Assembly (NCBI RefSeq): GCF_041956535.1
Contig: NW_027192200.1
Coordinates: 329,477 to 393,476, forward strand
From: Calcarisporiella thermophila CBS 279.70
Lineage: Eukaryota > Fungi > Calcarisporiellomycota
DNA length: 64,000 bases
Reading direction: 5' to 3'
This document shows positions 19,727-26,716 of this stretch, piece by piece. How positions within the stretch are numbered: position 1 is the stretch's first letter; every line of letters begins with the position of its first letter. The notes beneath the pieces are model-generated. The model was not told the origin of the DNA and did not search any database. It saw nothing but the letters and a program-made list of their open reading frames with translations. The position numbers and the translations under genes are program-made.

Positions 19727-20181
19727 TTAGGCCGCGGACATGGCGGTTTCTGACGGAATCGGATCCTTTGGATGTTTGGCTTCCATATGATTCACCACGA
19801 GTTTATAGTTCGCTATAGGTGTCTAAAATAAGTATATCTCTTTGAGTTGGAATTCGATCAGGCAACCAAAATACAGCTACTTTACTTTACAAACCGGGCA
19901 TTTCATTTGAAGACCAGCTTTACGAGCATCGAGCTGTGATTGACCACCTTTCTTGGACTCGGCTAGCTTGCGTGCCTTTTCTCTGTGGGTAATCGCATAG
20001 AATGAGATGGGTGAAGGAATTCTATAAACACATAATTGAAACAAAAAGATTATTTGCTCCATTACCTGGCTTGTTCCTAAAGAAAATAACCAAAGGGCAA
20101 TAGGGAAAATAGAGAGATCAACATATGGAAAGTGAAAGAATTATTGAGGATATACACAACCTTTTGCTTACCACGGGTCAT
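19727..20181 (-). CDS. ZNF706: Small 4F5/ZNF706-family zinc-finger protein (4 exons, including an 11-nt micro-exon at 20066-20076)
   Basis: Spliced: MTRGKQK-EQAR-EKARKLAESKKGGQSQLDARKAGLQMKCPVCK-TPIANYKLVVNHMEAKHPKDPIPSETAMSAA*. Confidence 0.85.
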
Positions 20182-20522: not shown

Positions 20523-20816
20523 TCAATATAATTGCCTTTTAATTGTTGCGATATGTCCTTGGAAACCCCGAAGGATATAAACTGCGGATATCACTATCGA
20601 AAACAAGCTTTAACCCAAGGGCCAGGATCGCTAAATCGAATTTCTCTCCATTCACATATTGGTAAGTATTTTTACATCTACACTTGCTATGCTGTTATTG
20701 AGGGAAGAAAGAAGTAAAACCCGAATCATTTTATTTTGGAAAGCAGCCCAATCATGAAAATTAAACATTTATTGTAAAGATACTCCTTATAATTGCTATG
20801 AATTGAATATAAACCT

Positions 20817-21059
20817 TTAATCATTCATACATGTATTGCCATAGGCCGGGTTAAGCACTCCTACAGCGTTGACAGTAAGGCCACATGCATTGACTGGTAT
20901 ATGAATTGGGGCCTTGATATTATTGCCGCTTACAACACCTGGTGAATCCCATGCATCCCCAGCACTAACAGCACCTACTCTACCAACTCTAACAGAAACT
21001 CCTTTAGATTGCGCAGCAAAAATAGAAAACAGACCAACAAATTCTGGTGTGTATTTCAT
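20817..21059 (-). CDS. Secreted short chaplin (ChpA-C/DUF320 domain), Streptomyces-like
   Basis: Signal-like N-terminus MKYTPEFVGLFSIFAAQSKG, then A.G.A..SPGVVSGNNIKAPIHIPVNACGLTVNAVGVLNPAYGNTCMND, which follows the chaplin consensus SPGVLSGNVVQVPVHVPVNVCGNTVNVIGLLNPAFGNTCVN with both Cys. Confidence 0.9.
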   Translation of the reverse strand: MKYTPEFVGLFSIFAAQSKGVSVRVGRVGAVSAGDAWDSPGVVSGNNIKAPIHIPVNACGLTVNAVGVLNPAYGNTCMND

Positions 21060-22518
21060 ATTGCAAGAGTATATAATGACTAGATTTAGTCAAGTAGTAT
21101 CGGGCTGAATAGCTGATGTTTTGAAATGATAAAAAAAAGTGAAATTTGTGTATAACTATAATGATTCGGGTAGGGTTGGCCCTAACTATACTGAATACTG
21201 GAAAAGTGCTGTATTAAATGGAGGAAAGTTGAGGTTTAGAATAGGCATATTTATATGGGATATGCACACTAGCTTTGGACGGATCGGGTATTCCTTTGCG
21301 GTTTAAGTAATAATAGAAGCATGTACATCGCTAATCATATAATTGAGAACTGCCATTGATTACAGAAATGGTTGCAGTATTGACAAATGCTATCATGAAA
21401 ATTGCGACTAAGAAAAATGGATTTCATGCTTATCGAAGTAGCTTGGATATTATTGGTGTTATACTGACATTTGAAAAGAACTGATTATAAAAAATGTTTG
21501 AGAAAAATGTGGTGTCATTTATATAAGGTATACATACTAGCCGTTAAGTGTTTGGTGTGTTTTCGCTGTAACTTAATCTATTACCCCGGCGAAGGAGGCT
21601 TGCAGAACAACCAAAATGAAGAATTTATAATTCCATTTAAAGAATTATGAAAAAGCCAAACATTGTAGTGGAGCAAATGGCTAGTAGGGTGAGTAACTTT
21701 AGTGGTGAAAGCATCATATTCACCTATTTTGAAAAATTAGGCATATTATTACGAAACCTACATACTATATCATCATGCAGGAGTTGTCCCCATTGGTATC
21801 TGATTTGTCTGCCTACCTGCAATAGACCCTGTACGAAGTAATATTTGCTCTAATGGATATACATGAATGTATGAAGAGGTGGAATCATGTTCAGTGATGA
21901 TTCGCTTGCTAATTTCAGAATGGCCAATCAACTTTGGGATATTCATAAGGATTCGAGTGAATTTGAGCATGCAGCTTTAATACAGCTTAGATCAACTTTG
22001 CTGATGTGTTTGCTGAAGATTTTTACCGGTGGAGCCGAATGATCGAGATCCTAGATAAAACGGCTAACAACGAAAAAGAGCTTTATGACAGAGTTGCGCG
22101 AATGCCTTCTGGGAAAATGGAAAGCCTACAGACGAGGATTGCGGCCGCTGATAGTAATAAAGAGGGAAACTAATCAAGCAAATAGGCGTATCCGTTAAAG
22201 TTTAGCAAAGGTTTGACATCACTCAGCTCCTGCAAGCACCGTCAATAGAGTCGAGCATACCCTCTCGAGTCGACCTGCCTTTCGCGGTATTGCAGCGACT
22301 TTGCAGCAATTCTATTGGCCGATGCATTGAATAGTTTAACAGCACTCCCCAATAACTCGAGCTGCATGGCCGATCATGGCTTTGTTTGGCAGCAGGCGGC
22401 ATCAAAGACGGGTTGGCATGAAGTTGTCGAAATTGCAGGCATGGGCGGGGCCTCCACCCCGTATAAAGAGGAAGAGCCTTCGGCCATCGTCGAATCTTAC
22501 TCAGCCGACCATTTCAAT

Positions 22519-23122
22519 ATGAAGTTTCCCCCGCTCCTTGCGGCTGCCTTGTTGGCCTCCCTCTCCACTTTTGCTGAAGGTGGCAGAATCATTCCTGTCA
22601 AATGTGATGCACGTGCGCGATACCTGGCCACGAGTAATAAGTAAGATTCCCCATTTACTCCTCCCAGTGCTAGGAACTCATGTCGGGCTCTACAGGCACT
22701 AACCAAAATTTTTTTCCTGCTTACTCTTGTTAACTTGTAGCGCAGATATAGTGCCTTACCCCCCAGTGGCTGGCCAAGATGTCACCTTCACTTTAGATGT
22801 TCATCTAGATCAAGCTGTGGACGGTGGAACTATCAAATATTTAGCTATAATTGGTCCTGTTACGATGCCTGAAGAACGCAGCCTCTGCGCTATGGTCGGT
22901 CAGCCTCCTTCTTGCCGACTTCAGAAAGGGGATCTCAGATTGACGTTTAAGCACAAGGTTCCTCTACCAGCGGTAAGGAGAGAATTTAAACGGAAAAAAC
23001 TCAAATATTGATAAATGCAATTGTACTTGTAGAAAGGTAGAAATATGGAACACGAGCTACGGGCTTTCGATAACGCCAGACGTGAAATTTTTTGCTATAA
23101 AGGCAATACCAAAGTTGTTTAA
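22519..23122 (+). CDS. Secreted ML (MD-2-related lipid-recognition, NPC2-like) protein 1, 3 exons
   Basis: Signal peptide MKFPPLLAAALLASLSTFAEG; Cys pattern C...IVPYPPVAGQDVTF...SLC...SCRLQKG...REIFC; TATAAA at ~22462. Confidence 0.8.
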
Positions 23123-24652
23123 GTTAAGAATCAAGCATTAACGTATGTAATGTGCACACACTTTCTGAGTTAGCTTTGCGCTTCTTCATACTATTTGTCG
23201 TTTGAAATGAATGCCAATCTTGGTTTGAATAAAATAGCTAAAAATATACTACTTAAGAGCACTACAATTGAATAATTCAATATTGAAGAACTCAATTATT
23301 GAGTTCTTCGATCAGATCGAATACAAAAATGGGATTGAGTAGCATGATCCAGCATGAAAAGGCGGAGCTTCTCTCGCCGCTCAAAGATTATTGCTACCAA
23401 AAAGGAATCTCTCCTGCTACACGGACTATTATATCTCCCGCACTTCTTTCCTATACTATAGATAACCGAGACTGCAGTTTTTCTCTTGATACCTAATTCT
23501 ATCCATATTATTTTTAGTTTATGAAAAACATAAAGAAATTAACGTACTGAAATCAAAATAGCCAAGAGAAGTAGTGTTTATTCACCTTGGGCTGGGGTTT
23601 TATTGGCTCAAAGAAGGGCTAACATGACTTCACTAAAGCTTTAGAATTTCTTTCCCGCATCCAAGTACGGCAATTTTGCTTAAAGTATTTTAATACTGAC
23701 CAAATGTTCTTTGTATGCAACAAGGGATGCGGTATCCGCTGAAGCTCGCCTGGGTACTCTGCTGTGACAAGGTTGGCAAGCAAAAAGATTCAAAACAGGT
23801 AAGTGAATAGTGTTGACATGGCATATATAAATGCAAAGTATTTTGTCTACAGAGGCTGGTTTATTTAGTACAACTTATATCCAATTGAATGTAAAGCTGC
23901 AACACGTAGAAGAGTATTCAGGAATAATGGCTCTAAATGATGACTCTCAGAAGGAGATAGGAATAGGTTGAATCATGTATGTTTTAATTATAGCTAATTT
24001 CTGTATGGCCTGTTGGTTTCGGGTTCACTATAAGGTTTCAAATGGATGTAAATTTTATATAGAATTCTATTTCGTATTAGCTCATATCAAGAAAATTCTT
24101 TCTGCTGTGCTCTCATGATTCCTGTCCTTGGAGTTGAATGAGAACAATCTGCACTTCTCTTATCAGTTGATTTATATGGAAGGTCTGATTAGAGTTGTGA
24201 AGGCGAGAGATGATGTCATTTACCGAAACCATGAAAGATTACACTTGAGAGTTAGAGTAGACGATGTCAATAAAGAGTGGGAAAACCGATTTCGCAAAAA
24301 TGTGTATCTGGGTAGGTTGAACTACTGTGAGCATTAATTACATAATATAGCACCTATAGTTTACGAAATCCTCTGGGTATTTAGACAAACACTTGCTCTC
24401 AAGCCGATATTCGTTTCACGGTATTCCAGCCACTCTGCGAGAAGCATTATTGGCCGATCCATCGAATCAATTACCAACCTTCAACAAATGCTCAATGCGT
24501 CTGGTCGATCATGGATTTTTATTGGCATTCAGGTGCATCAACAGCAGATTGACAAGGAATTTTTCGCATGAAGTTCTCCACTCAAGCTTATAAAACAAAA
24601 AGGCTCTTATCTATAGTCAAATCCTCTCCCCTATTCTTCCAAACATATCGAT

Positions 24653-25255
24653 ATGAAGACTGCCTTAGTCTTTGTGGGGGCTTTGTTACCCATCCTCTCT
24701 ATTGCAGCTGAAAAAATCCATTACGAACCATGTGGAAATAGTCAACTTCTTGGAAGGTTAATATCCTTTTTCTTTCTTATCCCAGTGCTAGAAACTCTTT
24801 TTCAATTCTCAATCCATCTTTTTATTTGCTTTCTTGCCCACTTTGGCTTAACATGATAGACAATCCATCATACAAGTTACTCCTGATCCTCCAAAAGCTG
24901 GCGAATCCATCAGTATAGTCGTCACAGTCGTTCTTGATACACTAGTGGCAGGTGGAACGAGTACTCTATCATCCTCTGTTGGTGCCCTAAGTCTCGCGGA
25001 TCACTTCAATCTTTGCGAAATCGCTGCGTCGGGAGGTGATCGTTGCCCTCTCCAACCAGGTCGCCACCACTTTAAACTTGTCCACAATGTTCCTGCACTC
25101 GCGGTAAGAAGAGAATTTAAATAGGAAGTAACCAAATATTTATATTTGCAATTTTATTATAGGCAAATCAAAGGTTGGATTTCAAGTTTGATGCGAAAAC
25201 TGACGACAGTCGCATGCTATTTTGCTTCAGTGGATATGCAGATGTCGTTCAGTAA
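24653..25255 (+). CDS. Secreted ML (NPC2-like) protein 2, 3 exons; tandem paralogue
   Basis: MKTALVFVGALLPILSIAAE..YEPC..VTPDPPKAGESISI..NLCEI..RCPLQPG..RMLFCFSG; TATAAA at ~24589. Confidence 0.8.
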
Positions 25256-26716
25256 CATATATAATGCACTGCTCACTTTCTGCATTAGCATTATATTTTG
25301 ACTTTTGAAAACGCAATATAGTGATATACAATAACTGATCTGAACTGGCGCAATATTGCCTACCCAAGCGGATTTTGTCGATCACTTTGCACTCAACCGC
25401 CACGATGATGGGGCATTCTTTTGTCTCATTTTTCGCTTATCAGTAATTCCGATTATTTGGCGAGAGGACAAATTCGAAAATTGCTTATGGTAGACCACCA
25501 AAATGGAGAGCAGACAGTGTTCTTGACATTTTCGCAAGAAATTGAAGCCGCAACTAGCGAGGTATCCCACGATTGCAATGTCCATAGAAATTCAATAATG
25601 CCAAAGTAGATGCAACTAGACTTTTGGAAGTAAGAGCAGTTGTATGTTTGCCGAAAGTTGTTGTCTATGTTTCACTTCTGTGAGATATATGATAATTTTA
25701 TTTCTCGATAACTGCTTAATATGCCAATAATATTATTAATAATTTCCCATTAAAAACTTTCATTAATTTGCTGTTCAGATTACCATTGCCCTTTCAATGA
25801 ATAAAGTCAATTTCAGGCAATGAGAACAGTTCTTTGGGGAAAACTTAATCTTTGATGGACAAGAGAGATAGCTTTTACTTTGCGTTCTTGATTGAATAAT
25901 ATATGTTGTTATTAGAGAAATATAATCAGAGGAAAGCTAAGATTACGGAAGCAAAGCTATGAAATAGAATGATAGAATGCTACGTCGATTTAAATATTGT
26001 GCATAACGCCTTTGAACACTACAGTTGTAGTCAACCCCGGAATATTGTGATGTCAGAGCCCTTTTCCATTGCAAGAAATTCACGCTCGGCTCAAATGTCT
26101 TTTAATTTCTTTGCTTAACTACACATTTTAATTTTGATAGAGAACCTGTGGTGAATAATAACGGGATCCTCCAGCATCCAGCGGAGCTTTCAATTTGTGC
26201 TTCGCAGCCTATTTTGATAAAACTGGGATCAGCGGTAGTATTACAACTACTACACATGGTGTTATTCGAATAGTTACGATTTTCGCAAATTCGACGGGGA
26301 CAGTGGTGAGCGTCCCCTCAAACCGGGCCAGCCCAAGTTCCGCATAATGAAAGAGCTTACCGAAGACTCGGTAAGGAGAAAAGTTTACTAAAAAAAACCA
26401 AATACATTCATATTTAAATTTAACTTACGGTGAAGTCCGTACAGAAAACTAGATTGAAACGTTTGACAACAGCGGTGGCTGGATTTTTTGAATGAGATTC
26501 GAAATGACACGGTTTAGTAGCTTGTAGAGTACACAGCCTTTTGTTTTTAGAATAGAACGCAATCAACCAATAGAACAGGCAATTGCTAAGCAGGATAGAG
26601 GGCACATAAGCACATATAATTACACAAAAACAAACTTTCTATGCCTGCTATTGAGCCGTGGGTTTGAAAGCTGCCAGTTGATGCACATGCTTTGCCCAAG
26701 TGATTTGATTATAGAA

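Follow-up and report, generated by a model that had tools for sequence, protein, structure and literature searches.

Convergence of filamentous bacteria with fungi is usually illustrated by chaplins, the amyloid proteins of the water-repellent Streptomyces coat, and hydrophobins. Gene transfer from bacteria into zygomycetes is well known. The closest described systems to the gene reported here are the short chaplins ChpD-H of Streptomyces coelicolor (Pfam PF03777, ChpA-C/DUF320), each composed of a signal peptide and one hydrophobic domain of ~50 residues with two cysteines at the family spacing, yielding a mature peptide of ~60 residues without a sortase tail. Each Streptomyces short chaplin is surface-active on its own and forms cross-beta fibrils (PMC3079736). 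Three GN motifs are given as conserved in chaplins (PMC7766987), and the review literature places the family in actinobacteria only (PMC4255298). The class I hydrophobins of fungi (PF01185) are functional analogues, likewise secreted, amphipathic and amyloid-forming at interfaces, but they belong to another family, with eight cysteines, and are not homologous to chaplins. A first-pass annotation of the DNA studied here mentioned hydrophobins for Dikarya; they have also been published outside that group (PMC6784888; bioRxiv 10.1101/2022.08.19.504535). Canonical hydrophobins are missing from many Mucoromycota (bioRxiv 10.1101/2022.08.19.504535).

We analyzed a stretch of 64,000 nucleotides, referred to below as the window, from Calcarisporiella thermophila, an early-diverging soil fungus of the Mucoromycota; a mitochondrial carrier encoded in the window is 100% identical to a C. 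thermophila protein. The minus strand of the window carries an uninterrupted ORF of 80 codons plus stop, which matches PF03777 over residues 28-79 (E 2.4e-22, 78.9 bits; cut-off 21). The profile search thus confirmed the chaplin identity proposed in the first-pass annotation, and the intronless 80-aa ORF with a hydrophobic N-terminus is present as it was described there. The 28-Mb assembly contains exactly three PF03777 loci, all single-domain, on the contigs designated C10 (the window copy), C30 and C1. The features of the window locus are as follows.

20817..21059, minus strand: coding sequence of the short chaplin, 80 aa, intronless (ORF and PF03777).
21000..21059, minus strand: putative signal peptide, aa 1-20, with predicted cleavage after G20; its DNA matches the C30 paralogue's at 82% identity, and it does not resemble the signal peptides of Linnemannia and Lentzea.
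20823..20978, minus strand: chaplin domain PF03777, aa 28-79, which contains Cys59 and Cys77, retains two of the three GN motifs and has five residues diagnostic of the subtype (D, W, K, L, Y).
21249..21255, minus strand: proximal TATA-like box, a putative promoter element ~190 nt before the ATG; the DNA around it resembles that upstream of the paralogues at ~70%.
21451..21847, minus strand: distal upstream block that matches the upstream region of C30 at 83% and that of C1 at 76% identity and contains another TATA-like box (21517-21523); it reads as a partial promoter duplication.
20768..20773, minus strand: AATAAA, 44 nt past the stop, found in both paralogues too, 52-53 nt past the stop.
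19727..19987, minus strand: the two final exons of a ZNF706/zf-met2-like gene with introns, the downstream neighbour (exon-wise matches below cut-off).
22519..25260, plus strand: two intron-containing secreted ML-domain genes, the upstream neighbours (context only).

The window protein has an architecture like that of ChpD-H: a putative signal peptide, a single domain, a predicted mature peptide of similar length, and two cysteines (Cys59 and Cys77) that align to invariant columns, the ORF stopping 3 residues past the second cysteine without a C-terminal sortase signal. It differs from them in its host and putative signal peptide, both eukaryotic, in having two GN motifs instead of three, in five residues (D, W, K, L and Y) that occupy these positions in 0.7-4% of 593 bacterial domains, and in that rodlin and long chaplin partners were not found. 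In addition, its mature peptide carries no net charge, against a mean of -1.8 over the last 52 residues of short chaplins. The domain had been called nearly textbook, a description that passes over the second (middle) GN motif, which is GL. Since fewer than three GN motifs are also found in 93 of the 593 bacterial domains, the missing motif marks a variant and does not exclude the protein from the family. The SPG and NP motifs, the cysteine pair and the overall hydrophobicity are retained, with a GRAVY of 0.24 for the last 52 residues (0.38 +/- 0.13 in 123 short chaplins) and of 0.32 for the whole mature peptide. The hydrophobic stretch at the N-terminus spans 10 residues with a mean Kyte-Doolittle value of 2.33 (2.18-2.62 in chaplin relatives); the putative signal peptide, whose n-region has a net charge of 0 and contains Pro and Glu, is weaker than the paralogue's. 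Codon usage is AT-rich, as had been noted: GC is 43%, and the GC3 of the gene is 0.26, compared with 0.88 for the Lentzea gene described below and 0.43-0.92 for host ORFs in the window. An AlphaFold2 model was uninformative (pLDDT 42.5), and a PDB search found no sequence relative. The exact protein is absent from a collection of 15 billion sequences, and the ORF may therefore be unannotated or withheld.

The surrounding genes contain introns, as previously described, and the first ML gene matches PF02221. The names given to the others rest on sub-cutoff Pfam matches, both for the second ML gene and for the ZNF706-like gene (exon by exon, zf-met2 E 0.005 and SERF-like_N E 0.09). A repeat of ~130 nt (70% identity) lies upstream of each ML-domain gene (window:22262-22391 and 24396-24527). 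A perfect inverted repeat with 21-bp arms (window:20479-20522) lies ~300 bp downstream of the chaplin; it occurs once in the genome, and we rejected the idea that it represents a mobile-element family.

The two other loci are likewise embedded in fungal DNA. The C30 copy, on a contig of 306 kb, is an intact, canonical-type chaplin of 79 aa with all three GN motifs, near dihydrolipoamide dehydrogenase-like and ubiquitin-conjugating-enzyme-like genes (named from sequence). The C1 copy, on a contig of 1.7 Mb, is frameshifted by a 10-nt deletion after the signal region and sits between a TPR-repeat gene and a WD40 gene. Both contigs carry fungal housekeeping genes. Among all three copies, the signal-peptide DNA is 81-91% and an upstream block 76-83% identical (the block over 400 nt), and each copy has a TATA-like box and, 44-53 nt past the stop, an AATAAA. 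Between the window copy and C30, the net indels preserve the frame. The linker after the signal peptide aligns to the paralogue with 29 matches out of frame and 26 in frame, of 54; we considered a compensated frameshift, for which the difference is these 29 versus 26 matches. We also considered whether the domain had been swapped into a pre-existing cassette of promoter and signal sequence; the gap between signal (82%) and domain (72%) identity does not show this, as it recurs between C30 and C1 (91 versus 81%). Oxidoreductase-like paralogues with 75% DNA identity (window:26717-27822 and L162:124-1220) lie 4-6 kb from the C10 and C30 chaplins, on opposite sides, hinting at a shared duplication history. 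Retrotransposon-like coding fragments are found ~1.4 kb from the C30 chaplin (L162:3070-3680), and beyond them an orphan secreted ORF of 224 codons.

We then compared the window chaplin with its relatives elsewhere. The best single-domain matches were a Logan contig (87%), a Lentzea chaplin (85%), Linnemannia elongata (81%) and L. schmuckeri (77%), followed by Streptomyces (<=77%); all named matches are actinobacterial save the two Linnemannia proteins. Fungal copies beyond C. thermophila were thus found on an L. elongata contig and in two more assemblies. The L. elongata gene (KAK3833011.1, "putative chaplin") lies within an F-box gene array on a 948-kb contig, with which the Logan contig SRR5822949 is syntenic; L. 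schmuckeri KAF9149535.1 completes the set. Read from the DNA, all three are intronless ORFs of 79 aa in a fungal context, and they belong to the same subtype as the window copy, sharing 37-39 of 44 core residues. The window gene is intact and conserved. Unlike the window copy, the Linnemannia-type genes have an unrelated signal peptide, other upstream DNA and neighbours, and a GC3 of 0.56. The only bacterial member found, WP_285748520.1 of Lentzea sp. NBRC 105346, has 37 of the 44 core residues identical but an actinobacterial signal peptide and a GC3 of 0.88. In a species-wide scan, it was the only match above 77% among the matches listed. The subtype occurs in 1 of 51 Lentzea genomes and 1 of 401 genomes of the family, and we accordingly rejected this genus, which almost always has no short chaplin, as the source of the gene. 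The Lentzea genomes (L169-L196) also contain an open frame of ~1000 codons with weak, repeated chaplin-like matches. A search of IMG/VR returned no chaplin, and a plasmid search returned canonical Streptomyces and Embleya types (58-71%) and no carrier of the window subtype. On the soil-metagenome contig Ga0154000_1021298 (L077), which is AT-rich (42% GC), a chaplin at L077:2-160 adjoins a eukaryote-type LRR fragment, and this contig probably represents a further eukaryotic host.

An unrooted tree of 111 domains (51 columns) places all fungal chaplins among actinobacterial domains. The window copy, the three Linnemannia-type copies and the Lentzea protein form one clade (support 100/98), which groups at 92/89 with Ga0154000_1021298 and Catenulispora-like chaplins, while the C30 paralogue falls among canonical Streptomyces chaplins. 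The name "Streptomyces-type" given to the gene at first pass thus fits C30 better than the window copy, which belongs to a distinct subtype also found in Linnemannia and a single Lentzea strain. Five residues (D, W, K, L/I, Y), each present in 0.7-4% of the 593 bacterial domains, mark the clade independently. The window protein carries six rare residues, of which no bacterial domain among the 593 has more than two, and nearly fixed bacterial positions are changed in the subtype (Q, 93%, to K; N, 90%, to L or I). When all fungal copies and Lentzea were forced into a single clade, the topology was not rejected (p-AU 0.38), and chaplins may therefore have entered fungi once or several times.

Together with the PF03777 match and the GC3, this nesting bears out the earlier proposal of an ameliorated gene of actinobacterial origin in an early-diverging fungus. 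That origin is well supported by the sequence comparisons, and its combination with residence in the C. thermophila genome is, in our estimate, nearly certain. The gene is nested among donor-lineage sequences, patchily distributed in the host lineage and linked to host genes, the pattern of horizontal acquisition, although the patchiness is only suggestive because short ORFs often go unannotated. Compared with the Linnemannia genes, dN is 0.07-0.08 and dS 1.7-3.5, values that average over both lineages and do not prove current function. A dN of ~0.07 against a dS of ~2 indicates purifying selection on the peptide, and since synonymous sites are near saturation (dS about 2-3), the transfer was not recent. 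Judged from its sequence, the window gene is a genuine chaplin under selection that was acquired horizontally; its subtype is distinct and found for the most part in fungi.

How the subtype reached its present hosts is less clear-cut. The domains of Calcarisporiella and Linnemannia are as similar to each other (37-39 of 44) as the Linnemannia copies are among themselves (38-39 of 44), whereas a host control gene shows 53-54% between the Calcarisporiella and Linnemannia lineages and 86-94% within Mortierellaceae. This comparison, of one control gene with a short constrained domain, favours later movement over inheritance from a common ancestor. Of the five subtype members found, four come from fungi, the single bacterial one has no counterpart in its family, and among the closest sequences outside the subtype is one on the AT-rich, eukaryote-like contig Ga0154000_1021298. 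A tentative and rather doubtful scenario would be that chaplins entered Mucoromycota and became a working amyloid layer beside hydrophobins, and that the D-W-K-L-Y subtype arose in fungi, moved between Calcarisporiella and Linnemannia and then passed back into Lentzea. If true, a functional amyloid would have crossed between kingdoms and returned. The data are matched just as well by an unsampled actinobacterium from which all three lineages received the subtype.

The first-pass annotation had suggested that the gene brought a bacterial hydrophobic-coat system, possibly standing in for hydrophobins. Counting both families in the genome gave, besides the three chaplin loci (one frameshifted), three intact ORFs for class I hydrophobins that exceed the Pfam cut-off of 23 bits: one at C25:89122-89352 (80 bits) and a tandem pair at C18:373349-375051 (30 and 25 bits). 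One of the three is already annotated in C. thermophila. A class II search of the genome, run without a positive control, gave no match. In this fungus, the chaplin thus exists alongside hydrophobins and does not replace them. The word "system" was also an overstatement: rodlin was not found in the genome with a single query (verified as NF041022), and none of the three loci encodes a two-domain, sortase-anchored long chaplin of the kind present in the Streptomyces chaplin-rodlin sheath. Upstream of both the C25 hydrophobin and a secreted protein carrying a bacterial SH3 domain (PF08239, E 4e-13; L164:94-396, L164:4542-4868) lies a common stretch of 52 nt (85% identity).

Most likely, the window gene encodes a secreted, self-assembling surfactant or adhesion peptide; we put the probability of this predicted surfactant or amyloid role at about 0.6. 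On this reading, a short-chaplin domain from actinobacteria has been domesticated in C. thermophila, with a putative fungal promoter, signal peptide and polyadenylation signal and with host-like codon use, and has been duplicated to three loci. The window copy would be expressed, secreted through the ER and cleaved to a peptide of ~6 kDa with a Cys59-Cys77 disulfide; before disulfide formation, the predicted mature masses are ~5.98 kDa for the window copy and ~5.71 kDa for C30. Like Streptomyces ChpD-H, the mature peptide may assemble by itself into an amphipathic cross-beta film where air meets water or the wall, reducing surface tension or promoting attachment, as an accessory to the fungus's own hydrophobins and without rodlins or wall-anchored long chaplins. 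Because each Streptomyces short chaplin is self-sufficient (PMC3079736), the missing partners do not exclude assembly. The frameshifted C1 paralogue, the weaker signal peptide, the GN-to-GL change and the hydrophobins that already supply the function speak against this reading.

Were the hydrophobins missing, the chaplin could serve as the principal hydrophobic coat, given that the two families are analogues and that many Mucoromycota have no canonical hydrophobins (bioRxiv 10.1101/2022.08.19.504535). Such replacement could hold in Linnemannia, yet the three hydrophobin ORFs make it highly improbable in C. thermophila. It is unlikely that the window copy, a remnant of a transfer that was once useful, has recently come under relaxed selection or fallen silent, following the C1 copy with its 10-nt deletion. 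The rearranged upstream region with its partly duplicated promoter and the slightly better out-of-frame alignment of the linker would fit such decay. The ORF is nevertheless intact, with frame-preserving net indels relative to C30 and retained TATA-like and AATAAA elements, and 37-39 of 44 residues are the same as in Linnemannia and Lentzea despite near-saturated synonymous sites.

A functional peptide may also have been repurposed, the D-W-K-L-Y subtype acting outside the fungus's own coat, for example in substrate adhesion or by interfering or co-assembling with the chaplin layer of neighbouring actinomycetes. The changes at near-fixed bacterial positions, the occurrence of the subtype where rodlin was not found and in a genus that almost always has no short chaplin, and the attachment role of chaplins (PMC4255298) are consistent with this idea. 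The retained cysteine pair, SPG and NP motifs and overall hydrophobicity speak against it, and we regard repurposing as unlikely. Bacterial contamination is very unlikely as the source of the loci, since three copies, all among fungal genes, share upstream and signal-peptide DNA. For the window copy, a contaminant or a chimeric join with actinobacterial DNA has a negligible probability and is effectively refuted by this common flanking DNA, by the GC and GC3 values, and by a closest DNA match (77-79% over 145 nt) that comes from Linnemannia and not from a bacterium.

DUF320 annotations are present in other zygomycete proteomes. NCBI automatic annotation already labels one Linnemannia protein "putative chaplin", which is a database label only. 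A literature search, conducted mostly outside subscription journals, found no paper on chaplins in fungi, and the C. thermophila genome paper does not mention them. A fungus with both chaplins and hydrophobins allows a direct test of whether a bacterial amyloid can work on a fungal wall when sortase anchors and rodlins are missing, and a chaplin from a thermophilic fungus is a candidate biosurfactant. Fungal chaplins may also help explain water-repellent surfaces in hydrophobin-poor Mucoromycota. They may be commoner than databases show, because genes of 80 codons are easily missed or mis-spliced. Both deposited Linnemannia models, for example, are mis-ended (L004:8001-8350; L161:5946-6183), one by a spurious intron that drops the second cysteine and the other as a partial model, while the ORFs in the DNA are intact.
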